DNA of 11,531 nucleotides, taken from the IMG/VR virus record IMGVR_UViG_3300008216_001605, positions 1 through 11,531 of that record; one strand, given 5' to 3'. The notes under the pieces were generated by a model. The model did not search any database and had not been told where the DNA came from. It worked only from the letters and a program-made list of their open reading frames with translations. Of this stretch, positions 1-11,531 are shown piece after piece. The position numbers were made by a program, and so were the translations under genes. How positions within the stretch are numbered: position 1 is the first letter of the stretch; each line of letters opens with the position of its first letter.

Positions 1-30
1 ATGTTTAGATGAGACGTAATTATATATAAA

Positions 31-56
31 CTACGGAAAACGTACCATTTTTGTAG
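31..56 (+). terminator. Possible hairpin/terminator of the upstream gene
   Basis: ctacggaaa (31-39) pairs with tttttgtag (48-56), including two G-U pairs; no clear U-tail. Confidence 0.25.
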
Positions 57-60
57 AAAA

Positions 61-74
61 TATAGTATAATAAA
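61..74 (+). promoter_or_regulatory. -10 element (TATAAT) upstream of the head operon, without a canonical -35 (possible late promoter)
   Basis: TATAAT at 66-71 in tatagTATAATaaa; no TTGACA-like hexamer 16-18 nt upstream. Confidence 0.45.
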
Positions 75-75
75 T

Positions 76-170
76 CGTGTAACTATATTATAGTTATGCG
101 GGTTTAGAAGGTCGGAAGTGGCTTAGACCAACCTTCTTAGGATATCATATATTATATATACTAGGAGGGT
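76..170 (+). promoter_or_regulatory. Structured 5' leader and RBS of the scaffold gene
   Basis: Inverted repeat cgtgtaactata-t-tatagttatgcg (76-100); stem agaaggt (106-112)/accttct (131-137); SD AGGAGG at 163-168 before ATG 174. Confidence 0.5.
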
Positions 171-173
171 ATT

Positions 174-1010
174 ATGGCAGACGATGTTCTAAATCGGATA
201 GAGAAACACATGGAGGGTAATACGTTGGCCCTTTCTGCTGTTGCGGAAGTCTTGCAGAAGATGGATGACCGTTTTATTCGTGATGAAGATGCGGTTCTTG
301 CAAAACAAGAGCAGGAACAGGCGTTAGATGAACGGACTACAATGGTTAAAGCCATTGCTTCGGAAGTCTATGGCATGATTAAAGCTGACAATGGTATGGA
401 CGTAGATGGCACGAAGGTACGGTCTGGAACTAGGATGAAGGGTAGGGGTGAAGATTCTGAATCTCCAGTAAATCCTACTACTAAAATTTCAGATCAGCAA
501 GCCACCATTCAAGCTGCAGAAGATGAAGAAGAGAATGGAAAAAAGAAATTTAATTTTGACAAGAAGCAGGATGATGAAGAAGAGGAAGAAGTAGAAAAGG
601 AAGGAAATGGCGCAAAGGAGTATCCTGAGGAAGAAGAAGAAGCAAAGAAAGGAATGTATAAGGGCGAGGATGAAGATAAGGAAGAAGATGATAAAGAGAT
701 AGAAGAGATGGCTAAAGAGCTTGATGCTTTGAAAAAGCAGATAGCTAATACTGAGGCTAATATGCAAAAGGCGGTGCAAGCAGAGTCGGAGCAACGGCTT
801 CGGAAGATGGGATTTAGAGAGGAATTGGGTCTTCAAGCTCCCCAACAGATTAACCCCCTGGGAATTGATGGAACTACGCCACTTATAAAAGCACAGGAAT
901 CTGTGGATACAGTTGATCAGTTAGCTGGTATGTCTTATAAGGAACTGCGTAACCTTCAGGCTCAGATTGAAATGGGGAATACTGATGGGGTACCACGGGA
1001 ATTACTATAA
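174..1010 (+). CDS. Capsid scaffolding protein (putative)
   Basis: 278 aa with a strong SD, an E/D/K-rich low-complexity centre and helical/coiled-coil ends; lies directly upstream of the major capsid gene, the usual scaffold position. Confidence 0.75.
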   Translation: MADDVLNRIEKHMEGNTLALSAVAEVLQKMDDRFIRDEDAVLAKQEQEQALDERTTMVKAIASEVYGMIKADNGMDVDGTKVRSGTRMKGRGEDSESPVNPTTKISDQQATIQAAEDEEENGKKKFNFDKKQDDEEEEEVEKEGNGAKEYPEEEEEAKKGMYKGEDEDKEEDDKEIEEMAKELDALKKQIANTEANMQKAVQAESEQRLRKMGFREELGLQAPQQINPLGIDGTTPLIKAQESVDTVDQLAGMSYKELRNLQAQIEMGNTDGVPRELL

Positions 1011-1034
1011 AATTTAAATTAAAGGAGTCACACT

Positions 1035-2375
1035 ATGGCTAATCCTAGTTTATCAGAATACCTAGCACAGTCACAGCGGGGCTTGTATCAGTCGGTATTC
1101 GGCCCTGAATACCTAATGAAACAGTCCTATTTCACTGTTGATACTGCTACTGGTATCTTCAACACAACTTATGGACGCAAGGTGTGGCAAGCTTTGAACA
1201 ATCAGACTCGTTTCTTCAACGCTGTCCCAAGGGTAGTTTGGGGTAATACGGCTGGTTGGCGTGTCAGAACTGACCGTGGCTCAAGTAGGTCACGACCAGT
1301 AACTGAGACGGGGAGTCTCCCCACTGTCGATGTCTCCAATATTGCTACAGTATCGAGCTTGCCTCGTATTGTTTCCACGACCTTCGGTGCTTCTGTGAAG
1401 TCCGTCTTCACCGCACAGTTGGAAGGTGGTATCGGAGATGTTCTGGCGATGGAGAATGAGAATTCTCAGCTTGACCATATCAAGGAAATCAATGAAGAAT
1501 TGTTGGCTGGTGGGGCATTTATTGTATCTGCTGGTTCAACGACCTCCTTCACAGTACCCGCTGCTGTGGCCCATCACTTTAAGGTTGGTGATGCGGTAGC
1601 TATGAATGATGCTACCAGCGGTTTTGACAGGACTAGTGGTTCTGTAGTTTCTGCGGTTAACACTTCTACTGGGGTAGTGACCGTAGCTACTGGCACAGCT
1701 TTCGCAGATGGTGACCTAGCCTATTCTCACAGTAGGGCTGGTTTCACTTCCCTTGATGACATTGTAGCCGAAGATGGCATGGTTATCGGGGGTGTGACGA
1801 ATGGTGCCGAAGTTAGGGCTTATGACCTAACTTACAGTGACCGTGTTGCTGGTTCGTGGAATGCTGCTGCCAGCGTTCAGTTAAATAGTGGGACTGGACG
1901 AGCTTTATCCCTCACTCACCTGGATACTGCTATCCAGAAGATTCGTGAGAATGGTGGGGAGCCAAAGCTCATCCTTTTGGGCCATGACCAATACTTTAAC
2001 CTTGAACGTTTGTTAAACTCTAACCAACGTTATATGGGTCAGGAAGAGTACCAAGTTGGTGTGGGTTCAGAACGAACCTTCCCAGGTACCCGAACTGGTT
2101 TGGTTTTGGCTACCTATCAGGGCATTCCCATCCTACCAGATGCGGATGTGCCTAAGTCCGTGGCATCTAATGATGCAGTTTTGGGTTCCAACATCTATGT
2201 GTTGGATACTGATTACCTAGAAATTGCAGTTGCTCAACCTACGCAGTATGTTGAGAACCGTGACTACTTTGCTGCTAATGCGTTGGTAGTGAGGGGATTG
2301 CTCTACACAATGGGCGAAATGCGGTGCAAGAATCTCTGGGTACAGGCTAAGATTGGGGATTTGAACGCTTCCTAA
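1035..2375 (+). CDS. Major capsid protein (HK97 fold) with a beta-rich insertion domain
   Basis: 446 aa with SD AAGGAG. HK97-like succession of segments: VWQALNNQTRFFNAVPR, E-loop-like VTETGSLPTVD, spine helix DHIKEINEELL, A-domain LDTAIQKIRENGGEPKLILL and YQGIPILPD...IYVLDTDYL. Followed by a strong terminator. Confidence 0.85.
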   Translation: MANPSLSEYLAQSQRGLYQSVFGPEYLMKQSYFTVDTATGIFNTTYGRKVWQALNNQTRFFNAVPRVVWGNTAGWRVRTDRGSSRSRPVTETGSLPTVDVSNIATVSSLPRIVSTTFGASVKSVFTAQLEGGIGDVLAMENENSQLDHIKEINEELLAGGAFIVSAGSTTSFTVPAAVAHHFKVGDAVAMNDATSGFDRTSGSVVSAVNTSTGVVTVATGTAFADGDLAYSHSRAGFTSLDDIVAEDGMVIGGVTNGAEVRAYDLTYSDRVAGSWNAAASVQLNSGTGRALSLTHLDTAIQKIRENGGEPKLILLGHDQYFNLERLLNSNQRYMGQEEYQVGVGSERTFPGTRTGLVLATYQGIPILPDADVPKSVASNDAVLGSNIYVLDTDYLEIAVAQPTQYVENRDYFAANALVVRGLLYTMGEMRCKNLWVQAKIGDLNAS

Positions 2376-2383
2376 TTTTTCCT

Positions 2384-2418
2384 GGGGGGGTGGGCATAAC
2401 CCCACCCCCCTTCTTTAT
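2384..2418 (+). terminator. Rho-independent terminator after the major capsid gene
   Basis: 10-bp stem ggggggtggg (2385-2394)/cccacccccc (2401-2410), loop cataac, followed by ttcttta. Confidence 0.85.
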
Positions 2419-2429
2419 ATGGAGGAAAG

Positions 2430-2603
2430 ATGAGAATAAATCGTCCTAAACATCCTACTTTAATCCGTTATGATGATAACGGAAACCCTATAGATTATTA
2501 TAGGAAATCTCCTCTTCCTAAGTTTGGAACTAATAACCCTATTCAAGTATTGAGGAAAATGCAACATGACTCAAATGAGAAATCGGATAAATCCTCTGGA
2601 TAA
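2430..2603 (+). CDS. Small basic, Pro-rich hypothetical protein (57 aa; not in the ORF track)
   Basis: GGAGG at 2421-2425, then ATG 2430: MRINRPKHPTLIRYDDNGNPIDYYRKSPLPKFGTNNPIQVLRKMQHDSNEKSDKSSG*. Overlaps the next ORF start. Confidence 0.55.
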   Translation: MRINRPKHPTLIRYDDNGNPIDYYRKSPLPKFGTNNPIQVLRKMQHDSNEKSDKSSG

Positions 2604-2862
2604 TGATGGGTTAGAAGTCAAAGTTGCGGTGTATATGGAACGTCTAGATACTTATATAGAGACTTCCACCGAATTAAATAGAACTTTAGTTTCCGGTTTA
2701 GAAAGAGTTAATGATGAATTAGATGAATTAAAACAATGGCGCACTAAATTTTATGGTGCCAAAACCCTCTTTATGTTTCTCTTTGCAATGTTTGCCCATG
2801 CAGGGGTGGTCTTAGCTGCAATAGTTGGCATTTTAAATTGGTACGCAAAATCCCCAAATTAA
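2566..2862 (+). CDS. Coiled-coil plus C-terminal TM protein (XhlA/holin-like architecture)
   Basis: Heptad region LEVKVAVYMERLD...LDELKQWR followed by the hydrophobic segment LFMFLFAMFAHAGVVLAAIVGIL. Confidence 0.6.
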   Translation: MTQMRNRINPLDNDGLEVKVAVYMERLDTYIETSTELNRTLVSGLERVNDELDELKQWRTKFYGAKTLFMFLFAMFAHAGVVLAAIVGILNWYAKSPN

Positions 2863-2877
2863 TGATAGGAGTCTTGC

Positions 2878-3801
2878 ATGGCTAATGAACGACATAATGA
2901 TGCACGAGAATGGGAGATAGATTCATCTACCCGACAATCTGTTCATCCTTATACAAAATATTCTCCCTTCAGAACTGCAACTTCTACTACAGCCGCTAAT
3001 TTATTAGCTATTGATAGGGGGGAGATTGCAGTAAACTGGGTCACTAACCCTAGAATAGAGGCTACAGATGTTAGTATGTTTACAGCTACGGGAGCTACTG
3101 TTGCTAGAGATACGGGCCAAGCAGCTGTAGGGTCAGCTTCTCTCCTCACTAATCCAGGCAATGCTGGAGCAGGTGAGGGTTTTTATTGGGTTTCTCCTAG
3201 TGTCCCTTTTAGTGTAACTCCTCAACATCTCACGGCTCAATGTGAGGTTAGGGGAGCTTCTGCATCAGGAAGTGTTAAGATACAGATTACTGATGCCTCT
3301 GGTGTGGAACTTGCAACTTCTGCTGATACTAATTTAACCACCAGTTTTGCACAAATTACTGCTTCTTATTCCATAGCAGGCAGTACTGCCGCAGCAACGT
3401 ATAGAGTTTATGTTGTTAGTGCTGCAAACCATAATATTAACTGGTATACTGATAAGATAATGTTTGAAGTACGGGAAGATACTAATGCTGTATCGACTTA
3501 TGTAGATGGAGCTTCTGGTTTGAATTATGAATGGTCGGGAACAGCTAATGCATCTACTTCTAGGAAGCGTCCTGCCATGTCTGTCATACGTGGGATACAG
3601 ATTAAAAATGAATCTGGGACTAGTGCTGAAATTGTGTATGTATCTTTTGATTCAACCGCTTCTACTACTACGGGAATCTCAGTATTAGCGGGGGCAACGT
3701 ATGAATCTAATTTTCCTATAGACTTTAGAGAGAATGTCTCCATAATATCTGCTTCTGGAACTCCTACTGTTAGTGGAGTAGTGTGGGGAGTCAATGGTTA
3801 A
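2878..3801 (+). CDS. Virion structural/decoration protein with a carbohydrate-binding-like beta-sandwich insert
   Basis: 307 aa, rich in Ala/Ser/Thr/Gly, SD AGGAG. NWVTNPRIE...YVDG resembles phage CBM-like jelly-roll domains; C-terminal beta-strand domain IQIKNESG...IVYVSFD...GISVLAG. Confidence 0.55.
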   Translation: MANERHNDAREWEIDSSTRQSVHPYTKYSPFRTATSTTAANLLAIDRGEIAVNWVTNPRIEATDVSMFTATGATVARDTGQAAVGSASLLTNPGNAGAGEGFYWVSPSVPFSVTPQHLTAQCEVRGASASGSVKIQITDASGVELATSADTNLTTSFAQITASYSIAGSTAAATYRVYVVSAANHNINWYTDKIMFEVREDTNAVSTYVDGASGLNYEWSGTANASTSRKRPAMSVIRGIQIKNESGTSAEIVYVSFDSTASTTTGISVLAGATYESNFPIDFRENVSIISASGTPTVSGVVWGVNG

Positions 3802-5300
3802 TGGGTACCTCTACGATTCAAACTGCAGTAGGTAAAATACCTAGTCCGTCTAATTGGGCATTCAATACTGAGATGTATCAGACTGTTGGTATTGATGCTA
3901 CCATACTTCCTATTGAAAAACAAGACAGTGGTAAGGTCACATTAGAAGATATTTCTAGTGCCCTTGATGAATATAAACGTTTATTTAAAGCGGGAATAGC
4001 ATCTAAAGCCGAACTTATAACTTTGTCTAGAGCTTATCCCGATGATTCTACTTATTCTAAAGCTGTCTCTAAATTAAGTGAAGGCGATGCGATGGTCTTA
4101 GGTGGCCCCGCATCGGTGGAATTAATTGATAGAGAAGGCCATTTAATTACTACACAAGCTTTAGAAAAAGCTTTTCATAAATATATGGATAACTTCCGTA
4201 CTAGGAATACAATGGTACTCCACAGTGACGTTCAGGTAGGGTGGGCCTTGCCTGCTTATATTTCTAAAGGTGGTCAGATATTTAAAGCTGGGGTGGGAGA
4301 AAACGGTTTATTCTTCATTACGGAATTGAGGGACGATACCAAAATAGCCCAACGGGTTATGGATCAAGTTAATGAGGGAAAGCTAAAGAGTTATTCTATT
4401 GCAGGGAGTGCCACCAAAGTACAGAATATGCAGAAAGGTTTACAACCCTATATGCAAGTAGACGAAATGGAACTGGCCGAAGTTACGGTATGTGAGAAGG
4501 GTGTAAATCAAAGTGCTGGATTTGATATATTAAAGGCTAAAGGAGCCGTTACTACTTGTATTGATGGTAGTTGTCTCATACAAAAACAGGAATGTGATGG
4601 TAGTTGCGTTATTCAGAAAGAAGAAGGTAAAATTACCCAGATAGATTCAGGCTATAGAAATGCTACTGATGTAGAAATGAAAAATGGTATTATGTGCGGT
4701 ACCTGTAAATTTTTTAATAAACAAGAAGGGACATGTGATATAGTCGAAGGAATGATTGAAGATCACATGTACTGTAAAGTGTTTGCACCATTAGATGAAT
4801 CGCCAACTATTGATGAAGGAAGGGAGTTAATTATGTTAATGGAAAAATCAGACGGGTCAATTGATTTTGTGGGGTCATTCTTGAAATGGATAGAGAAACA
4901 AGGCACATCTTCATCGCCAAAAGAAATGGCTGCGACCTTTGCCACTCTATTGAATACTGCGGGAAGGCAAGCAGAACACCACCAATTACTACGGGAGTAT
5001 GGATTTCCTTCTGAGCAACCCCCCGAAGCTATGAGATATACCCCAGTCATTGAAACAGAAACAGATGACTTTGGAATTCCTGTACACATGAAACCCCCTT
5101 GGACTGTAAATGAAGCTGGGTCGCATCTAGGAAAGAAATTAGATGCTGATGCCCCTACTTATGATACTTCTATAGCTGCTAAAGCACATAAAGATTTGCA
5201 AACTAATATGCATCCTTGGTATTCTACAGAAATCTCAGTGTCTTTTCCAATACGGAAAGCTTTTTCCAAATGGTTTTCTGATAATGAATTCTATTTATAA
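3801..5300 (+). CDS. HK97-family prohead (capsid maturation) protease with long N- and C-terminal extensions, including a HiPIP-like domain
   Basis: ATG 3801 overlaps the upstream stop (TAATG), SD GGGGAG. Core at ~4092-4540: GPASVELIDREGHLI, catalytic His in VLHSD, Ser in LKSYSIAG, and LAEVTVCEKGVN. CxxC-x9-C-x12-C at 4695-4775. Confidence 0.85.
   Translation: MGTSTIQTAVGKIPSPSNWAFNTEMYQTVGIDATILPIEKQDSGKVTLEDISSALDEYKRLFKAGIASKAELITLSRAYPDDSTYSKAVSKLSEGDAMVLGGPASVELIDREGHLITTQALEKAFHKYMDNFRTRNTMVLHSDVQVGWALPAYISKGGQIFKAGVGENGLFFITELRDDTKIAQRVMDQVNEGKLKSYSIAGSATKVQNMQKGLQPYMQVDEMELAEVTVCEKGVNQSAGFDILKAKGAVTTCIDGSCLIQKQECDGSCVIQKEEGKITQIDSGYRNATDVEMKNGIMCGTCKFFNKQEGTCDIVEGMIEDHMYCKVFAPLDESPTIDEGRELIMLMEKSDGSIDFVGSFLKWIEKQGTSSSPKEMAATFATLLNTAGRQAEHHQLLREYGFPSEQPPEAMRYTPVIETETDDFGIPVHMKPPWTVNEAGSHLGKKLDADAPTYDTSIAAKAHKDLQTNMHPWYSTEISVSFPIRKAFSKWFSDNEFYL
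4562..4626 (+). repeat. 33-nt (11-aa) tandem duplication inside the protease gene
   Basis: tgatggtagttg at 4562-4573 and 4595-4606; encodes DGSCLIQKQEC / DGSCVIQKEEG. Confidence 0.8.
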
Positions 5301-5332
5301 TCATAATATATAATATTCTTTGCCCATTGAAC

Positions 5333-5360
5333 TTGACTTTCTTCTCAATTAGTGTATAAT
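5333..5360 (+). promoter_or_regulatory. Sigma70/SigA-type promoter
   Basis: TTGACT (5333-5338), 16-nt spacer, TATAAT (5355-5360), in an intergenic AT-rich gap. Confidence 0.75.
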
Positions 5361-5400
5361 ACAATAAAGGCACCACTTGGAAGAAGGTACTGGGACAAGA

Positions 5401-5589
5401 ATGATAAGTATAAGTATTGGTATTGTCATAGTGGTTGGGATAATCGGATGGATAGTTAAGATTACTTCAACGAAAGGACACTCCCTAGAATATTATAAAT
5501 ATATGGAAAATAACAAACGTCCACCCCCATCTTATTTCGATCATTATGTCATGGAAGAATTGATACATCCTTATCGTTTAAAAAACTAG
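5401..5589 (+). CDS. Small single-pass membrane protein
   Basis: Likely ATG 5401 (the track uses TTG 5377); N-terminal TM ISISIGIVIVVGIIGWIV. Confidence 0.6.
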   Translation: MISISIGIVIVVGIIGWIVKITSTKGHSLEYYKYMENNKRPPPSYFDHYVMEELIHPYRLKN

Positions 5590-5597
5590 GCTAATTA

Positions 5598-5750
5598 ATG
5601 AAATACTTACGCCCCCAAATTTTACTTAGTATCCTAATATTAGGAGCTATAGCAATATTGTCCCTAGAGTTAGGACATATTGAAATTACTACGGGGTGTA
5701 TTACTTTATTGGGGGCATTGGGAATGAAAATTTTAGAGTCAGACAAGTGA
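5598..5750 (+). CDS. 50-aa two-TM membrane protein (holin-like; not in the ORF track)
   Basis: MKYLRPQILLSILILGAIAILSLELGHIEITTGCITLLGALGMKILESDK*: two hydrophobic helices and a charged C-terminus; fills the gap between + strand genes. Confidence 0.7.
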   Translation: MKYLRPQILLSILILGAIAILSLELGHIEITTGCITLLGALGMKILESDK

Positions 5751-5875
5751 AAAAGAGTTGGGTACGCTGTCCAGGGTGTAGTCGAAAGCAACATGCTAAA
5801 ACTACTAAGTTTGGAACTATGTGTACGCCTTGCGCTAAACAAGGCAAACAGGTTAAGACAGGCCGATTTAGATAA
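5747..5875 (+). CDS. 42-aa basic zinc-finger protein (not in the ORF track)
   Basis: GTG start overlapping the upstream stop (GTGA): MKKSWVRCPGCSRKQHAKTTKFGTMCTPCAKQGKQVKTGRFR*, with CxxC-x14-CxxC. Confidence 0.65.
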   Translation: MKKSWVRCPGCSRKQHAKTTKFGTMCTPCAKQGKQVKTGRFR

Positions 5876-5890
5876 TTAAGGAGTGATAAG

Positions 5891-6100
5891 ATGGTAGAGT
5901 GTTTTTGTGATATGAATGCATACGTTTTAACAGGTCTTTGTGAATGTGAAGAAGATTGTGTTTGTGAATGTGAGGTATGTGGGTGTAACCCACACGGTTT
6001 AAATCCAGAAATTGGTTTATGGTATGCAGATCCAGTAGAATCCCCTGTTTGTGCTTGTGGTGGAAACTGTAGTTGTGAGCGAACTTATGATGACAATTAA
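5891..6100 (+). CDS. Metallothionein-like Cys-rich protein
   Basis: 13 Cys in 69 aa, all in CxC motifs; strong SD TAAGGAG. Confidence 0.7.
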   Translation: MVECFCDMNAYVLTGLCECEEDCVCECEVCGCNPHGLNPEIGLWYADPVESPVCACGGNCSCERTYDDN

Positions 6101-6440
6101 TAGAAAGGTATTGATTAAAGGATTATTCCTAGGAATTACTTTAGGTACTTTTATATGTAAATCTTTCTATGGTACTAGCAGTCGTACTTTACAAGATTTG
6201 GACAGGTATAAAACCACCCTGACCGCTATCTTAGATGCAGGAAAAACTTCGGGAATAACTATAATAAATGTTATTAATTTGCTTAAAGATAATGATGTAA
6301 GTCCTGAAGAAATGTTAGTATTAGCAGAAACTATAACAGCTAATAAGAAAACTTTAGATAAAACTCTTACTCTTCTTATTAAAGATTTGAAAGACCATGC
6401 CATTGAAAAAACAAAGGAGAAGGGGACACATGACCAATAG
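6087..6440 (+). CDS. Hypothetical protein with an N-terminal signal/TM anchor
   Basis: Likely start ATG 6087/6090; basic residues, then VLIKGLFLGITLGTFIC, then a helical body. Confidence 0.65.
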   Translation: MMTINRKVLIKGLFLGITLGTFICKSFYGTSSRTLQDLDRYKTTLTAILDAGKTSGITIINVINLLKDNDVSPEEMLVLAETITANKKTLDKTLTLLIKDLKDHAIEKTKEKGTHDQ

Positions 6441-6627
6441 ATTACTTCATTTAATTAATAGACTAAGAGGAATTTTTCTTTCTATGGAAGAAAGAGAAAA
6501 AGAAGTACGTGGGAATGAAACAAAAATATTAGCTTTAAATCTAGAAATAAAAAATCTAAAGGAAGATCAAGATGATGCTATGAAAGCTTTAGATGATTTA
6601 GAAACAGTTATTAAAAAATGGGAATAA
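6430..6627 (+). CDS. Coiled-coil hypothetical protein
   Basis: ATG 6430 after GGAGAAGGGG; heptad pattern ILALNLEIKNLKEDQDDAMKALDDLE. Confidence 0.65.
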   Translation: MTNRLLHLINRLRGIFLSMEEREKEVRGNETKILALNLEIKNLKEDQDDAMKALDDLETVIKKWE

Positions 6628-7085
6628 TAACGACTAGAATTTTAGATCTCACTAGGGCAGTGACCCCACCTACTTTAACAGAACCTTTAGATGAACATGA
6701 TACTGTGTGGATAGCACAAAGATTATTGGATGCCAATCTGATAGGCGGTGCAATGCAACGCAAAACCCTAGACAGTAAGTATTGGACTTGCACCCGTTTG
6801 GATTTCGATGCTATAATCAAGTGGGATTGGACGGACAATAAAAAATATGTAGCAGAAAAATATGATTGCGATAACTTTGCCTTTAGCTTTAAAGCCAGGA
6901 TGGATAGAAAATTTCATTTAAACAATGTGGGATTGGTGGTTGACTATTCGGGTGGACACGCTTATAATTGTGTCGTCTTTTCGGATGGCACGGCCGAACT
7001 CTTTGAGCCACAGAGCGATTTATTCACGACCTCCCAATTAGGGACTGGATACTATAAATGTGAATCGGGATTTATATTAATATAA
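6618..7085 (+). CDS. Papain-like/transglutaminase-like cysteine protease (MOA lectin C-terminal, Agglutinin_C-like domain)
   Basis: Motifs YDCDNFA (Cys), GHAYN (His) and FEPQ (Glu) in the family order, preceded by D-x-x-Y. Confidence 0.75.
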   Translation: MGIITTRILDLTRAVTPPTLTEPLDEHDTVWIAQRLLDANLIGGAMQRKTLDSKYWTCTRLDFDAIIKWDWTDNKKYVAEKYDCDNFAFSFKARMDRKFHLNNVGLVVDYSGGHAYNCVVFSDGTAELFEPQSDLFTTSQLGTGYYKCESGFILI

Positions 7086-7312
7086 TGATTAATGATAATG
7101 AAGAAAAATATAGGGAATTATTAGAGGCCGTTAGACCCCATTTTCCAAATGACCTAGCACAAGCATATGCTATAGTAACTGCTACCATTGGCCCTATCTT
7201 TAATACCGTTTTATTACAATTAGTGTGGAGACAATTAGAATTAGAATATATTCCTGATTGGACGAAGGCTCTACCATATGAAGTCTTTATCCAACGATTT
7301 AGTCTGAATTAG
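7085..7312 (+). CDS. Hypothetical protein
   Basis: 75-aa ORF coupled to the upstream gene by a TAATG overlap. Confidence 0.65.
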   Translation: MINDNEEKYRELLEAVRPHFPNDLAQAYAIVTATIGPIFNTVLLQLVWRQLELEYIPDWTKALPYEVFIQRFSLN

Positions 7313-7450
7313 TATCTTCCCAGTTAAATCGGGGGAGTAAGGAGGTGATCCATTCTCACCTATGGGGGCGTCTGAAAATGATGCCCCCAACCACTTGACT
7401 CATTTGGCTAAATGTGCGAAGATGGTGAAAATAAATTTTGAGAGGTGAGC
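7313..7450 (+). ncRNA. Structured RNA element with an extended 16S-complementary sequence (putative sRNA or translational leader)
   Basis: Stem 7316-7321/7332-7337; TAAGGAGGTGATCCA at 7338-7352; stem AGGTGA (7343-7348)/TCACCT (7356-7361); 10-bp GC-rich stem 7363-7372/7380-7389. Confidence 0.55.
7362..7448 (+). CDS. Possible 28-aa leader ORF
   Basis: MGASENDAPNHLTHLAKCAKMVKINFER*. Its TGA lies inside the SD of the next ORF, but the start is at the base of a hairpin and the SD spacing is long. Confidence 0.25.
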   Translation: MGASENDAPNHLTHLAKCAKMVKINFER

Positions 7451-7525
7451 ATGGAAATTAATGACCCAGTTAAAGCTTTTTGGATATTTATTATCGTTGG
7501 CATATTAGCATCTATGATATTATGA
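7451..7525 (+). CDS. 24-aa hydrophobic single-TM peptide (not in the ORF track)
   Basis: SD GAGGTGA (7442-7448) close to ATG 7451; MEINDPVKAFWIFIIVGILASMIL*; stop overlaps the next ATG (ATGA). Confidence 0.55.
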   Translation: MEINDPVKAFWIFIIVGILASMIL

Positions 7526-7821
7526 ATACAGAGAATAATGAATCCCCCATGCCCGAATGGGCCAGATTAGGAACTGAATTAATAGAAGGGTCAATGGAGA
7601 CACCTTTTTATGAGGAAGCAGTTCGTTTATTAAAGACCCCTGGAGTAGACCCAGCTTTATATATGTTTTTCTGCTCTTTACCACAAGGATACATATATAT
7701 AACTAATAAGTATCCGGTAGGTACGTGGTCAGTTGAAGAAGTAAGAAGATTAATGCAATGTGCTTTTATGTTAGGAACATATGTAAGGAAATCAGTTGAG
7801 GAAGTAGAAAAATTATGGTAA
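7522..7821 (+). CDS. Hypothetical protein
   Basis: Start revised to ATG 7522 (ATGA coupling) rather than TTG 7480. Confidence 0.65.
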   Translation: MNTENNESPMPEWARLGTELIEGSMETPFYEEAVRLLKTPGVDPALYMFFCSLPQGYIYITNKYPVGTWSVEEVRRLMQCAFMLGTYVRKSVEEVEKLW

Positions 7822-8018
7822 TGTCCTATTTAATTACGTCTAATGCAGAATATAATACTAGAATTAATGAGATTGAAGACAAGATTGATAGAATGTTAGA
7901 TAAATTACAGACTTTAGAGTATAATATTAATATAATATCTACTGCTTTAAATAAGGAGTTAGATAATATATCGGATATAATTAGAACATTAGAGGGTAAT
8001 CGCCATAAAGTAGGTTAG
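7815..8018 (+). CDS. Coiled-coil hypothetical protein
   Basis: Heptads INEIEDKIDRMLDKLQTLEYNI; start 7815 or 7821. Confidence 0.65.
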   Translation: MVMSYLITSNAEYNTRINEIEDKIDRMLDKLQTLEYNINIISTALNKELDNISDIIRTLEGNRHKVG

Positions 8019-8029
8019 GAGGGACTAGT

Positions 8030-8854
8030 ATGAGTTTATCTAAAATTGAAATTCATGAGAAGGTTTTATACCCAGTCACAAAAGTTTTAGCTGGGCAAGC
8101 AGGCGGAAGTGGAGTATTGGTTTATAGTGAAGAAGACCCCGATAAACCTAATAACTACATAAATATAGCTTTGACATGTCAACACGTTATTGATGGGGCC
8201 ATTAAAGTATCTGAACAATGGGATAACGTTCTTAAAAAGGACGTAAAGACTGACGTACTAGAAGAAGTTCGTATTGAAGTCTTTGACTATGACAAGAGTA
8301 AAGTAGTGTCTGCTAATTCTACGACAGCCCAAATCATTGCGTATGATAAACACCATGATTTAGCTGCTGTTAAATTAAATAATACTAGACCTATGGCTCA
8401 TGTAGCTAGTATTATTCCCAAAGAAGAAATAAAAGACTTACAAGTTGCTGATCCTATATGGGTTAGCGGTTGTTCGCTCCTTCATGACCCCTTTCCCAGT
8501 CCAGGAAATCTAACGTACCTTAGAGAAATCATTGACCAGAAATCATATGTAATGCAGAATGCTCCTAGCATCTTTGGAAATTCTGGTGGTGGTTTGTTCC
8601 ATGGAGATACTGGACATTTATTGGGGCTAACGTCTAGAATTACTTCTACTCAATTAGGATTCGGTATAGATATTATGACATGGATGGGATTTAGCACCCA
8701 CCCAGAGAGATTATACGAGTTCTTTGAACACCAAGAACTTCAGTTTTTGTTTGACTCTACGGATAATTATCATGATGCATTACATCGTAGAGACAGTCGT
8801 AGGCACGAAGCTTTACGAAATCTCTTGTTTGAATCTAAGGGAGAAAGTCCATAA
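8030..8854 (+). CDS. Trypsin-like (S1/HtrA-like) serine protease, stand-alone
   Basis: GSGV, ALTCQHV (His), HDLAAVKL (Asp), IFGNSGGGLF (Ser); SD AGGAGG. Confidence 0.9.
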   Translation: MSLSKIEIHEKVLYPVTKVLAGQAGGSGVLVYSEEDPDKPNNYINIALTCQHVIDGAIKVSEQWDNVLKKDVKTDVLEEVRIEVFDYDKSKVVSANSTTAQIIAYDKHHDLAAVKLNNTRPMAHVASIIPKEEIKDLQVADPIWVSGCSLLHDPFPSPGNLTYLREIIDQKSYVMQNAPSIFGNSGGGLFHGDTGHLLGLTSRITSTQLGFGIDIMTWMGFSTHPERLYEFFEHQELQFLFDSTDNYHDALHRRDSRRHEALRNLLFESKGESP

Positions 8855-9162
8855 TGTTAGATGAACGAAGATGGATAGCTCAGAACTGGAAGATTCCCGA
8901 TACAGTACATTGGCATCCTTGTTGTCAGGAACACCCAGACGTTTCAATCCAACAATCTTTAGTAGGAAAGACATCTTCTGATGATTCAGAGAAAACCTCA
9001 GTAACTTTTAGATGTCCTAGAGGTCATGAGTATGAAGCTCCTGAACCCTTTATTCTTACTACACCTGATGCAGAATGTAATTCTGGCCCGTTATGTATTT
9101 ACTGTTATGTTACATGGTTACATATTAATATTGGCACAGAAGAATTTATTGTCAAAGATTGA
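8854..9162 (+). CDS. Cys/His-rich putative metal-binding protein
   Basis: HWHPCCQEH, CPRGH and C-x5-CIYC; TAATG coupling. Confidence 0.65.
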   Translation: MLDERRWIAQNWKIPDTVHWHPCCQEHPDVSIQQSLVGKTSSDDSEKTSVTFRCPRGHEYEAPEPFILTTPDAECNSGPLCIYCYVTWLHINIGTEEFIVKD

Positions 9163-9163
9163 T

Positions 9164-9367
9164 ATGTTGGTCAAATTTGGATATTGTAGGATATGTGATA
9201 ATGGGCCAGACAAACAAAATAGGCATTGGGTACAAGATTTAGTACAAGGGCAAATCATCGCTACCTCAATATTACGAGAATGTACTAGTTGTGGGACAAC
9301 ACCCCCCAATAAAAATTTACTATATATAGAAGTTAAAGTGGCTCAATTAGGCAAGGAATATGAATAA
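9164..9367 (+). CDS. Zinc-ribbon protein
   Basis: Start revised to ATG 9164, just after the upstream stop; CRIC...CTSCG. Confidence 0.65.
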   Translation: MLVKFGYCRICDNGPDKQNRHWVQDLVQGQIIATSILRECTSCGTTPPNKNLLYIEVKVAQLGKEYE

Positions 9368-9530
9368 ATGGGAACATAGGGATAATAAATTAGAGAAAAA
9401 AAGAAGGATACCTTTTCCTATCTTTAAAGAAATAGTTCCTAAAGATAAATCTAAACAAAAGGAGATTAAACAAGCTAGACGGGATAAGGAAGCTTTTTGG
9501 GATAACCTGGATTCAGAGGGTGATGAATGA
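9360..9530 (+). CDS. 56-aa charged hypothetical protein (not in the ORF track)
   Basis: MNKWEHRDNKLEKKRRIPFPIFKEIVPKDKSKQKEIKQARRDKEAFWDNLDSEGDE*; overlaps both neighbours, with ATGA coupling to 9527. Confidence 0.6.
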   Translation: MNKWEHRDNKLEKKRRIPFPIFKEIVPKDKSKQKEIKQARRDKEAFWDNLDSEGDE

Positions 9531-10027
9531 ATATAAACAGTGATTCTTTTGATTGTGGACATGAAGAAGGTGGAGATGAAGAACCCAAGGTAATTCATCT
9601 TACTAGGGACGAAGTGTTGTATATAGATGATAGATTGACTATGATGATTGAAAAGGATGTACGGGCAGAAGGTTTTACCACTGTAGTTCCTATTGTAGCT
9701 AATGCGGGTTTACCGGCACCAGTAGATTTATTAGATAAAATAGGTATGGCGGTCTTAGAAGTTACTGATGAAGACTATGCAGAGGAATTAGTATCTGTTT
9801 CAGTAACAAGTACAGATTTATATATGTTACGAGAAATTGCAAAAAGTTCTCTTAAGTTAAATGGCAAGTTTGTAGGGCTAGCTTTAAAGAAAAAGATATA
9901 TAAGATTCTCTTTGAAGAAGAATACAAGGCAGATCGTACATTTAAAAGATTGCTTTCAGACATTCATTTAGACGATAGTTTAGAGAGTGAATCATCTAAG
10001 CTCGATTGGAGTGGAGAGTCGGGGTAA
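9527..10027 (+). CDS. Acidic hypothetical protein
   Basis: 166-aa ORF with SD-like GAGGGTGA upstream. Confidence 0.75.
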   Translation: MNINSDSFDCGHEEGGDEEPKVIHLTRDEVLYIDDRLTMMIEKDVRAEGFTTVVPIVANAGLPAPVDLLDKIGMAVLEVTDEDYAEELVSVSVTSTDLYMLREIAKSSLKLNGKFVGLALKKKIYKILFEEEYKADRTFKRLLSDIHLDDSLESESSKLDWSGESG

Positions 10028-10032
10028 TCTAG

Positions 10033-10063
10033 CTTAACATTAATACCACCTCTTAATGTTAAG
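10033..10063. repeat. Perfect 11-bp inverted repeat
   Basis: cttaacattaa / taccacctc / ttaatgttaag. Confidence 0.8.
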
Positions 10064-10091
10064 GGCGGCACTAGGTTACTCTGGTTCTTCC

Positions 10092-10124
10092 AAATGGGTT
10101 CTCTCTTAGAGAACCCATTTCTTA
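10092..10124 (+). terminator. Perfect 13-bp hairpin, terminator-like
   Basis: aaatgggttctct / ctt / agagaacccattt, followed by ctta. Confidence 0.6.
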
Positions 10125-10135
10125 TAGGAGTACTT

Positions 10136-10375
10136 ATGATAGAAATTATGGCGGGTAGTACCCTACTAGGTATATCTTTATTTTTAGCCATTATTAATTG
10201 GAAAATTTATAAAGTAACTGTAGAAATGTTAAAAGTTACTGTAGATATACATTATAGAACTTTAGATTTATTAAAGTGTACTCAGAAAACTTATCAAATA
10301 TTGGGGGGCGAAGATGGGTTGACAATTGCTGACGCAAGTGCTAAAGTAATTCAGACAAAAAATTCAAACCATTAA
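10136..10375 (+). CDS. Membrane-anchored hypothetical protein
   Basis: Start revised to ATG 10136 after AGGAG; TM segment LLGISLFLAIINW. Confidence 0.6.
   Translation: MIEIMAGSTLLGISLFLAIINWKIYKVTVEMLKVTVDIHYRTLDLLKCTQKTYQILGGEDGLTIADASAKVIQTKNSNH
10319..10347 (+). promoter_or_regulatory. Sigma70-type promoter with extended -10, inside the 3' end of the preceding ORF
   Basis: TTGACA (10319-10324), 17-nt spacer ending in TGc, TAAAGT (10342-10347). Confidence 0.55.
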
Positions 10376-10385
10376 GGAAAAGTTT

Positions 10386-10613
10386 ATGTATTATTCCGTG
10401 AAGTCAGACTTTATATGTATGGGGGAACCTTATAATGTACAAGCTATAGTAAAGGCTTATAATTATGCTAGTGCCCAAGTTGCACTAAATTGGCTGACCA
10501 AAGCTAAGACTTGTATGTGTAAGGAATGTTTAGAAAGTTATAAGAAAGATCATTTAGTTTATATAGAACTACCTGAACATATGCCAGTTTATAATATGTG
10601 TGTAAAACCTTAA
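10386..10613 (+). CDS. Cys-containing hypothetical protein
   Basis: 75 aa; TAAGGA upstream; CMCKEC motif. Confidence 0.6.
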   Translation: MYYSVKSDFICMGEPYNVQAIVKAYNYASAQVALNWLTKAKTCMCKECLESYKKDHLVYIELPEHMPVYNMCVKP

Positions 10614-10650
10614 GGCTGGCAAAGATTTTTGGAAAGACGTATCAGTATGG

Positions 10651-10689
10651 AGCTATAGCAAGAATCATTAAGAATGATTCTTGGTAGTT
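10651..10689. repeat. Long intergenic inverted repeat/hairpin
   Basis: caagaatcatt / aag / aatgattcttg (10659-10683), extended by agctat/gtagtt with G-U pairs. Confidence 0.75.
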
Positions 10690-10725
10690 ACTTCGCAAAA
10701 TTAACCCAAATTTAGGAGGTCTTAA

Positions 10726-11001
10726 ATGGTAGCTAGGAGAACCCAGAGCAAAAGCTCTGATAAGAATCAGGTATATCTTGCAAAAGCACGACAAGCAGCG
10801 TACAAATTGGCACAACAGAAAGGGTTTATTACTTCGGATGATGTTGTTAACGTGGTTGGGATGCCCAGTTCCCCTTCGGTAGTTGGCTCTATCTTCAAGG
10901 GTAATGGATTCACTAGGGTTGGTTACACGTCTTCTACTCGTAACTCTGCTCATGGCAGGGAAATAGGGGTGTGGCGTTTAAAGTCTAAGCTTCTAAGTTA
11001 G
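10726..11001 (+). CDS. Basic putative DNA-binding (winged-helix-like) phage protein
   Basis: SD AGGAGG; ITSDDV...VVGSIF...STRNSAHGREIGVW pattern resembles small phage wHTH-like proteins. Confidence 0.6.
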   Translation: MVARRTQSKSSDKNQVYLAKARQAAYKLAQQKGFITSDDVVNVVGMPSSPSVVGSIFKGNGFTRVGYTSSTRNSAHGREIGVWRLKSKLLS

Positions 11002-11017
11002 GCTTAGACTATTTCAA

Positions 11018-11062
11018 ACCATTCCCCAGTTTTGCGGAGGCTGGGGAATGGTCTTCAGTTAT
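11018..11062 (+). terminator. Terminator-like hairpin
   Basis: accattccccag (11018-11029)/ctggggaatggt (11041-11052), then cttcagttat; preceded by a second stem agtctaagc/gcttagact (10982-11010). Confidence 0.65.
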
Positions 11063-11079
11063 TTAAAGAGGAGTAAAGA

Positions 11080-11169
11080 ATGTTTAACCCATTTATGATG
11101 ATAACTAATTTAGGAATTCTAACAGGTGTTTGGATAACGTTAATTTGTTTACTATTAAATGTTATTTAA
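11080..11169 (+). CDS. 29-aa hydrophobic peptide (not in the ORF track)
   Basis: SD GAGGAG; MFNPFMMITNLGILTGVWITLICLLLNVI*. Confidence 0.5.
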   Translation: MFNPFMMITNLGILTGVWITLICLLLNVI

Positions 11170-11343
11170 ATGGCTCCAAAACAAGTAACATATCCAGACG
11201 CATTAGAAATATTAAGGGGGGCATATGAGCGAGAGAAAATACAACTTACTGCCCATATATCTACCTTGGAAGTCTCAATATCTCAACTTAAAGTTAAGAT
11301 TAAGAAGCTTGAAGAACAAGCTGCGAGAAGGGGACTCAAATGA
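11170..11343 (+). CDS. 57-aa coiled-coil protein (not in the ORF track)
   Basis: MAPKQVTYPDALEILRGAYEREKIQLTAHISTLEVSISQLKVKIKKLEEQAARRGLK*; leucine-zipper-like heptads. Confidence 0.6.
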   Translation: MAPKQVTYPDALEILRGAYEREKIQLTAHISTLEVSISQLKVKIKKLEEQAARRGLK

Positions 11344-11368
11344 GTTTACCACTGGAGGAAACTAAGTA

Positions 11369-11531
11369 ATGGATTGTTTCATTTGTAGGAGCAGTGAATC
11401 GAAGGGGGGCCAAGATGCCAACAGGTAAAGACCAAGTGGAATACAATCGGGGATTAACGAGGCTGGCAGAGTCTGCTAGGTTGACCGATGCAGAAATCTT
11501 AGCCATGTTTGAATCAATCTTCGGCCCGAAT
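11369..11531 (+). CDS. Hypothetical protein, truncated by the window end
   Basis: GGAGG upstream; MDCFICRSSESKGAKMPTGKDQVEYNRGL... open to the window end; start uncertain. Confidence 0.5.

Follow-up and report, generated by a model that had tools for sequence, protein, structure and literature searches.

Why would a tailed virus of marine waters keep, at the edge of the gene block that builds its head, a protein of only 69 residues in which 13 are cysteines? This question is raised by an 11,531-nt stretch of viral DNA (positions 1 to 11,531 of IMG/VR record IMGVR_UViG_3300008216_001605, here called the window), which covers the head-morphogenesis block of a tailed virus, comes from a record estimated to be 15% complete, and contains a short cysteine (Cys)-rich open reading frame (ORF). 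Our preferred answer, to which we assign a probability of roughly 45%, is that its product is a cytoplasmic, virus-specific and modular metal-thiolate protein, metallothionein-like in its action and belonging to no described metallothionein family. Taken on its own, the binding of metal by this protein is, judging from its sequence, probable, while a physiological role as metal buffer or donor is tentative and open to real doubt.

The Cys content of the ORF is hard to attribute to chance. Cys makes up 18.8% of its residues, compared with 7.8% in the next richest ORF of the window and a mean of 1.7% over the window's ORFs. In 300 random windows generated by a first-order Markov model, the maximum number of Cys per ORF (of at least 50 amino acids, aa) was 8, with a mean of 4.3, so the observed 13 lie far beyond random expectation. 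The residues concerned (4, 6, 17, 19, 23, 25, 27, 30, 32, 54, 56, 60 and 62) form CFC, CEC and CVCECEVCGC, followed by a 21-residue Cys-free spacer (residues 33–53) and CACGGNCSC. A preliminary description, made from the letters alone, had recognised the CxC blocks and the spacer and had divided the middle of the protein in two, where there is a single continuous five-Cys run, C-x-C-x-C-x-x-C-x-C; its remarks on the Cys content, the acidity and the strong Shine–Dalgarno motif were all confirmed. Acidic residues outnumber basic ones by 14 Asp/Glu to 1 Lys/Arg, with 1 His and 5 aromatic residues, and an AGGAG-like motif precedes not only this ORF (Table 1) but also most of its 29 homologues, described below.

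Inspection of the sequence revealed no signal peptide, lipobox or hydrophobic segment in the protein, and its N-terminus is acidic. A cytoplasmic location is therefore expected, and since dense CxC motifs would there find themselves in a reducing environment, ligation of soft metals is expected over the formation of disulfides. A lipoprotein or o-spanin reading was rejected on the same inspection, with signal peptide and lipobox absent and the N-terminus acidic. More generally, the family has neither the signal peptide or lipobox nor the even, fixed number of Cys that would mark a secreted disulfide-rich peptide or an o-spanin-like lipoprotein. The high thiol content, together with the oxidative stress that surface-ocean hosts face, would suit a metal-free protein serving as a thiol-rich redox buffer or existing as a disulfide-bonded peptide, but we regard this as very improbable. 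A fixed disulfide fold is hard to square with Cys counts that vary and can be odd, or with the absence of a signal peptide, and CxC spacing is poor for internal disulfides and typical of the metal-thiolate clusters known from metallothionein chemistry.

The ORF is not an isolated occurrence. A protein identical to that of the window is encoded on 4 other metagenome contigs, and a relative in IMG/VR has a 62-aa homologue with 13 of 13 Cys and a shorter spacer. Using the neighbouring prohead protease as bait, we collected 77 related loci and scanned them for small Cys-rich ORFs, which yielded 29 distinct ones (42–84 aa, 9–19 Cys). In most loci these lie ~190–850 nt 3′ of the protease, and in two at up to ~2.2 kb. 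Of the 57 loci whose sequence continues for 900 nt or more past the protease, 42 were scored as having the Cys-rich gene, a count that includes L049, likely a wrong-frame artefact. All 13 Cys are invariant in an alignment of 13 near relatives, with synonymous TGT/TGC swaps at the Cys codons, and seven Cys columns remain invariant or at least 90% conserved when 28 divergent members are aligned. The Cys are thus conserved, and viral and metagenome proteins do include relatives: these 29 homologues at a syntenic slot, and 15 short Cys-rich proteins among the 1.84 billion representatives searched by profile.

The pattern of substitutions tells the same story. Pairwise ratios of nonsynonymous to synonymous substitution rates (dN/dS) for the Cys-rich gene are 0.2–0.4, rough values with dS near saturation. 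With the Cys codons removed they rise to 0.26–0.55 (the protease has a value of 0.10, and the trypsin-like gene further downstream one of 0.04), which indicates that selection acts mainly on the Cys and that the remainder is loosely held, as expected of metallothioneins, in which conserved Cys accompany a drifting remainder. A variant contig in another sample (run X2) differs by E20D, V24I, G31E and one synonymous change, with all Cys intact, and has an in-frame 3-nt deletion at 5991 that removes one spacer codon. These data indicate that the Cys-rich ORF is a functional coding gene under purifying selection. That it might be non-functional, or the precursor peptide of a modified natural product, is suggested by little besides its being a short Cys-rich peptide; no modifying enzymes are encoded nearby, and the conservation, the Shine–Dalgarno motifs and the purifying selection make this explanation barely credible. 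We also observed, in run X2 (an aquatic viral metagenome), a contig in which position 5848 is joined to 6298 through 395 different letters, so a co-occurring relative carries a replaced, divergent Cys-rich region.

Across subfamilies the length and sequence of the linkers vary widely, with the spacer ranging from about 6–8 to 24 residues, while the Cys pattern and the acidity stay. The Cys fall into three kinds of module, which we define as A (CxC, gap, CxC, gap, CxCxCxxCxC), B (CxCGGNCxC or CxCxxCxC) and C (CxCxxCxC plus CxCxxCxCxxC). The window protein and most relatives combine A with B, and B is kept even in distant subfamilies. Other arrangements are A alone (L013, L015 and P0014), A and B with a five-Cys block (18 Cys; P0015 and the near-identical P0029, which is listed in 120 blocks of a metagenome collection), C followed by A (19 Cys; L042 and L079), C alone (a 49-aa protein on an 87-kb contig, 55% identical to the N-terminus of L042), a three-Cys remnant with B (L033) and B alone (L075). 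Single modules are recorded for L013, L015, P0014, L075 and L099. The combinations give 8 to 19 Cys, and counts of 9, 11, 13 and 19 occur. Because modules have been gained, lost and repeated, and because Cys counts are odd as well as even, this history favours the evolution of a metal-thiolate protein over that of disulfide knots or fixed binding surfaces.

On the preferred reading, module A would fold round a few clustered soft metal ions, on the model of the three-metal, nine-Cys beta domain of vertebrate metallothionein, and module B (CxCGGNCxC) would hold one further ion or complete the cluster. A chain might then carry about four ions of the Zn/Cd type, or more of Cu(I), and during infection the protein could store or buffer ions of the Zn, Cu or Cd type at high capacity and possibly pass metal on to the virus's own metal-dependent proteins. 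In favour of this picture are motifs beyond chance, 29 syntenic homologues, invariant Cys, variable linkers and shuffled modules, as well as the fact that the database echoes of the family are all metallothioneins, all of them below cut-off. The protein is also of metallothionein size (below ~10 kDa; 69 aa, with family members of 36–96 aa), and its 13 Cys in 69 residues, with six CxC pairs, fall within the ~15–30% Cys, arranged as CxC, CxxC or CC, that typify metallothioneins (family range 17–24%).

Several observations weigh against this reading. None of the 28 members examined reaches the gathering cut-off of a Pfam metallothionein family, and significant similarity to any metallothionein family is lacking. 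The best Pfam score, that of L026 on PF00131, is 19.7 bits against a cut-off of 23; the other sub-threshold matches are to PF02068 in three members (best E 0.043) and to PF12749 and PF02067 in one each. A family profile run against all PDB sequences returned a sole, non-significant match, the beta domain of rabbit metallothionein-2a (2mrb; E 3.2), and these weak resemblances are compositional. With its five aromatic residues and extreme acidity the window protein is unlike the classical metallothioneins, which are Lys-rich and free of aromatics. Most relatives have 1–6 aromatic residues and L026 has none, but scarcity of aromatics and His is a weak criterion, since plant and bacterial metallothioneins break it too. 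The gene is missing from about a quarter of the related loci with enough flanking sequence, no RNA runs with the locus were found, and neither the tight linkage to a small membrane protein nor a site at the edge of the head module is obvious for a free metal buffer. Finally, a plain metal sponge would hardly call for such acidity or for a D-L-W-x-x-D spacer motif that is invariant in the near subfamily, and the invariance there of N9, A10, L13, G15, W44 and D47 fits a specific binding surface as well.

These last features lead to a rival in which the Cys and their metal are only the scaffold of a mini-domain that binds a host target, for instance as an acidic DNA mimic or inhibitor in host takeover or anti-defence. 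A net charge of ~−13 in 69 residues would suit such a protein, as would the invariant non-Cys residues and the spacer motif of the near subfamily; outside the Cys it evolves more rapidly than the structural genes do, a trait of proteins engaged in an arms race, and in some lineages its gene has small accessory neighbours (ThyX, an OB-fold ORF) in place of structural ones. Yet only the Cys and the acidity persist across subfamilies, with the number of modules left free, and a defined interface would hardly survive such change. Nor was any similarity to DNA mimics or anti-defence proteins found in PHROGs (window protein) or in Pfam and NCBIfam (family). We hold this explanation to be unlikely, though worth keeping in view.

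The structure models are disordered, in keeping with an apo form whose fold depends on metal. AlphaFold2, run on the 28-sequence alignment, gave a predicted local distance difference test score (pLDDT) of 43, the ESM Atlas model had a pLDDT of 0.32, and comparison with other Atlas entries, whether of features or of structure, turned up nothing of use. Low confidence of this kind proves nothing in itself.

How far does the family extend? The profile search of 1.84 billion representatives returned 17 proteins at E≤0.001, of which 15 are short and rich in Cys like the family itself; the other two are long and were matched over several stretches, presumably through composition. Among the clusters at 50% identity, the two that were checked most closely, P0009 and P0015/P0029, have the same viral block as their context, and the contigs of P0007 and P0018 do not extend far enough to reveal theirs. 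Cluster members come from JGI/IMG, ENA, Logan and MetaClust only, with ‘hypothetical protein’ as their sole label. No cellular homologue emerged from this search or from a pattern scan of 185,579 species genomes, in which the family was not found at the sensitivity of that scan. With the window protein as query, a word-index protein search returned the query alone, Pfam gave nothing at E≤1 and PHROGs nothing at E≤0.1 (PHROGs having been run with the window protein only); tblastn against 50,697 phage records produced a single chance match (E 10), and a megablast comparison of the entire window with phage records produced none. An NCBIfam scan of the 28 members gave nothing relevant, and no paper describing the family was found in the literature searched. 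Profile A2, when run against Nitrosopelagicus and Dehalococcoidia bins, likewise gave no match, yet the 49-aa module-C-only variant was read at the expected slot on the 87-kb contig; having let this form escape, the profile evidently misses some variants. Overall, the searches indicate a previously unnamed family seen only in metagenomes and viromes, within one group of uncultured marine tailed viruses. The clear cellular homologues that a host-derived auxiliary metabolic gene should have did not appear, and the gene, called auxiliary in the preliminary description, does not look host-derived.

The gene stands in a compact neighbourhood (Table 1) whose most constant companion is TM2, a 50-aa ORF for a membrane hairpin. 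TM2 is conserved in very divergent relatives and, in nearly all subfamilies, lies just ahead of the Cys-rich gene; 27 loci have both genes when TM2 is identified by a strict motif, and TM2 is also present in L021, L029 and L099. On the 3′ side, the 14-nt overlap with the 117-aa ORF suggests translational coupling. These arrangements could point to a membrane-associated unit, formed with the hairpin protein and perhaps with the anchored 117-aa protein, that senses metal or redox state for the timing of lysis or the passage of ions. Besides the hairpin ORF directly 5′ in nearly all subfamilies, the very divergent ones included, and the N-terminal hydrophobic segment encoded by the overlapping ORF, the occupation of this slot by other small Cys- or His-bearing proteins in L076 and L075 would agree with such a unit. 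Adjacency alone is weak evidence, and the subfamily of L048, L062, L070, L072 and L081 carries the Cys-rich gene with no hairpin ORF that could be recognised within 260 nt on its 5′ side; matches to holin or spanin families were lacking, and the lipoprotein/o-spanin reading fails. We therefore consider a membrane unit quite improbable.

Table 1. Features of the 11,531-nt window around the Cys-rich ORF
Feature	Positions	Strand	Remarks
Acidic scaffold-like ORF	174–1010		
SU10-type major capsid protein	1035–2375	+	
307-aa ORF	between capsid gene and protease ORF		
S78 prohead protease ORF	3783–5300	+	long C-terminal extension
Two tandem short repeats	~4560–4625	+	just 5′ of the HiPIP-like segment; a C-x3-C pair in each, C-[ID]-G-S-C-[LV]-I-Q-K; four further Cys
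HiPIP-like four-Cys domain	4605–4814	+	in C-terminal extension of protease; C-x2-C, x9, C, x12, C, then an aromatic residue
Small hydrophobic ORF	5377–5589		70 aa; fast-evolving (26% identity, dN/dS 0.72 vs L005)
TM2, membrane hairpin ORF	5598–5750	+	50 aa; two hydrophobic segments; R-P-Q-I ... G-M-K-I-L-E
Basic Zn-ribbon-like ORF	5749–5875	+	42 aa; CPGC, x17, CTPC; weak zinc-ribbon matches; GTG start overlaps TGA of TM2
Shine–Dalgarno-like AAGGAG	5878–5883	+	7 nt 5′ of the ATG of the Cys-rich ORF
Cys-rich ORF	5891–6100	+	ATG at 5891, TAA at 6098–6100; 69 aa, 13 Cys; net charge ~−13
Module A	5900–5986	+	residues 4–32; nine Cys: CxC, x10, CxC, x3, CxCxCxxCxC
Cys-free spacer	5987–6049	+	residues 33–53; semi-conserved (I/V)-D-L-W-x-x-D in near relatives
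Module B	6050–6076	+	residues 54–62; four Cys: C-x-C-G-G-N-C-x-C
117-aa ORF	6087–6440	+	N-terminal hydrophobic segment; 14-nt overlap with Cys-rich ORF; called as a gene on L003 and L004 and conserved in L005
155-aa ORF	6618–7085	+	PF18022 (C-terminal domain of fungal ricin-type lectins), E 1.1e-8
Trypsin-like serine protease	8030–8854	+	PF13365, E 1.4e-10; second protease beside the prohead protease
Two overlapping ORFs	8854–9162 and 9026–9367	+	CxxC-type Cys pairs; possible small zinc-binding proteins; in the shared stretch only one frame can be a real gene

Other members of the block change more freely. The slot between TM2 and the Cys-rich gene holds the Zn-ribbon-like ORF in the window and in L008–L012, L014, L016 and L019, does not hold it in L005, L006, L013, L015 and L021, and in other lineages is taken by a 44-aa ORF (L092) or a 168-aa OB-fold ORF (L087 and L093). 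Together with a domain in the protease that resembles high-potential iron–sulfur proteins (HiPIPs), this variable 42-aa ORF makes the metal-related neighbourhood real, in a form that differs from the neighbouring zinc fingers of the preliminary description. Further downstream, after a run of small ORFs, the 155-aa ORF is conserved in all longer relatives and has the motifs C-D-N-F-A and G-H-A-Y-N, which we take to suggest a papain-like Cys-His fold. No gene of the block is more strongly conserved than the trypsin-like one, with 88% identity and dN/dS 0.04 relative to L005. In an abundant lineage (L087, L093 and L094), the protease lies within a 1166-aa fusion ORF that is followed by an 809-aa ORF, and an 18-Cys three-module protein is found between the OB-fold ORF and ThyX.

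The HiPIP-like domain deserves separate mention. A search of the PDB with the single segment found PioC (6xyv) at E 0.011; with a profile of 29 sequences the match to PioC improved to E 6e-6, and the HiPIP 3h31 was matched at E 0.005, the four Cys ligand positions being aligned and invariant. The motif is present in 55 of the 77 related protease ORFs. A Pfam scan gave no HiPIP match in the protease ORF, and AlphaFold2 yielded a poor model of the segment (pLDDT 51). In the literature searched, we came across no account of a phage head protease with an iron–sulfur (Fe-S)-type or HiPIP domain. With this conserved domain inside the protease ORF, and with the Cys-rich gene following the scaffold, capsid and protease block, the Cys-rich protein might help in head assembly, either by delivering metal or sulfur to the HiPIP-like domain or by serving as a small internal or accessory capsid protein. 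The HiPIP-like motif is kept in loci that lack the Cys-rich gene, such as L034–L041 and L047–L056, and in other lineages the Cys-rich gene is flanked by ThyX and the OB-fold gene; moreover, CxC-rich proteins are, to our knowledge, not known as Fe-S carriers. An assembly helper is thus decidedly improbable, and we retain the metal-thiolate protein, with its suggested function in the handling of metal, as the preferred reading.

Concerning the virus itself, a related 64.7-kb contig has nearly all its genes on one strand and encodes a family A DNA polymerase, a DnaB-like helicase, a ribonucleotide reductase, a portal and a tail tube; ThyX is carried by related contigs. The bacterial-type replication genes and the strong Shine–Dalgarno motifs favour a bacteriophage, and the earlier wording ‘phage-encoded’ is likely to be right. 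The nearest isolates by capsid protein are haloarchaeal tailed viruses and a Methanofastidiosa virus (25–30% identity). This haloarchaeal similarity prompted us to consider a magrovirus, that is, a virus of Marine Group II archaea. Magroviruses have been described with a family B polymerase and a chaperonin (PMC5434244); the relatives have neither, and possess instead a family A polymerase, a DnaB-like helicase and a ribonucleotide reductase, on which ground the candidate was rejected. Closer capsid relatives (L095–L099; 72–76% identity) are on contigs placed in Nitrosopelagicus and Dehalococcoidia bins of one co-assembly. Since the binning of viral contigs is unreliable, these labels are weak evidence of host. 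A search for amoC gave no match, and nor did its control search. The runs containing the locus are viral metagenomes from marine and aquatic settings; in one brine metagenome a minor part of it (15% of the words sampled) was present.

What appears new here is a virus-restricted, unannotated sequence family, whereas its presumed functional kind, the metallothionein type, is already known. If the protein does bind metal, a metallothionein-type family would have arisen within viruses, at one genomic slot of a widespread marine lineage, and the capture of several metal ions per chain would be a new way for a virus to redirect host resources in an ocean where trace metals limit life. The family would also offer metalloprotein chemistry a compact and naturally modular set of metal-binding peptides. 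The Cys-rich protein and the HiPIP-like domain of the protease suggest that metal cofactors matter in particle assembly, which is undescribed for tailed viruses in the literature searched. One could go further and propose a metal-handling set that unites a thiolate protein of shuffled modules with a conserved membrane hairpin as its partner, a Zn-ribbon protein found in some relatives only, and the HiPIP-like iron–sulfur domain of the prohead protease. That this is the first virus-only metallothionein-type family, and part of a capsid-assembly set that manages the scarce trace metals of the ocean for particle building, is an attractive idea that we rate as improbable.

How, then, does the family compare with the metal-binding proteins already described? 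The label ‘metallothionein-like’ holds for its composition, its CxC motifs and its two-block layout and not for family membership, all Pfam scores being below cut-off; by these comparisons the Cys-rich protein lies outside every described metallothionein family. The beta domain of vertebrate metallothioneins (PF00131; Cd7 metallothionein-2a, 2mrb) is similarly rich in CxC, has about nine Cys in about 30 residues and aligns to module A. Unlike the Lys-rich vertebrate protein, the viral one is strongly acidic and contains aromatic residues, and common descent is unsupported.

Plant metallothioneins (types 1–3, and Ec/PEC, PF02068) likewise have two Cys blocks separated by an aromatic-containing, Cys-free spacer, and the viral motifs CxCGGNCxC and CxCGD(E/G)HCxC presumably resemble their Cys-Gly-rich motifs. 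The viral spacer is ~6–8 to 24 residues long as against ~30–45 in plants, the viral proteins are built of one to three modules, and they are associated with viruses and prokaryotes. The two-block layout of the window protein is therefore not accompanied by a constant spacer in the family or by a significant Pfam match, and the resemblance to plant metallothioneins put forward earlier is superficial, given a spacer that varies in length and members with one, two or three modules.

The bacterial metallothioneins SmtA and BmtA are, like the viral proteins, small and of the prokaryote world, and bind several Zn through Cys. Searches of Pfam, NCBIfam and the PDB gave no match to them, and searches for cellular homologues of the viral family found none. 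Nor does the viral protein show the Cys/His pattern and the zinc-finger-like core by which SmtA is defined.

Viruses have been credited with metallothioneins before. In their passages on auxiliary genes, studies of soil and fumarole viruses report metallothionein genes among them (PMC12917443, citing Huang et al. 2021; PMC13317609). Those genes, like the one described here, are carried by viruses and proposed to encode metal binders; they were called by annotation, belong to known cellular families and come from metal-rich habitats, whereas the Cys-rich family is unannotated and belongs to the marine water column.
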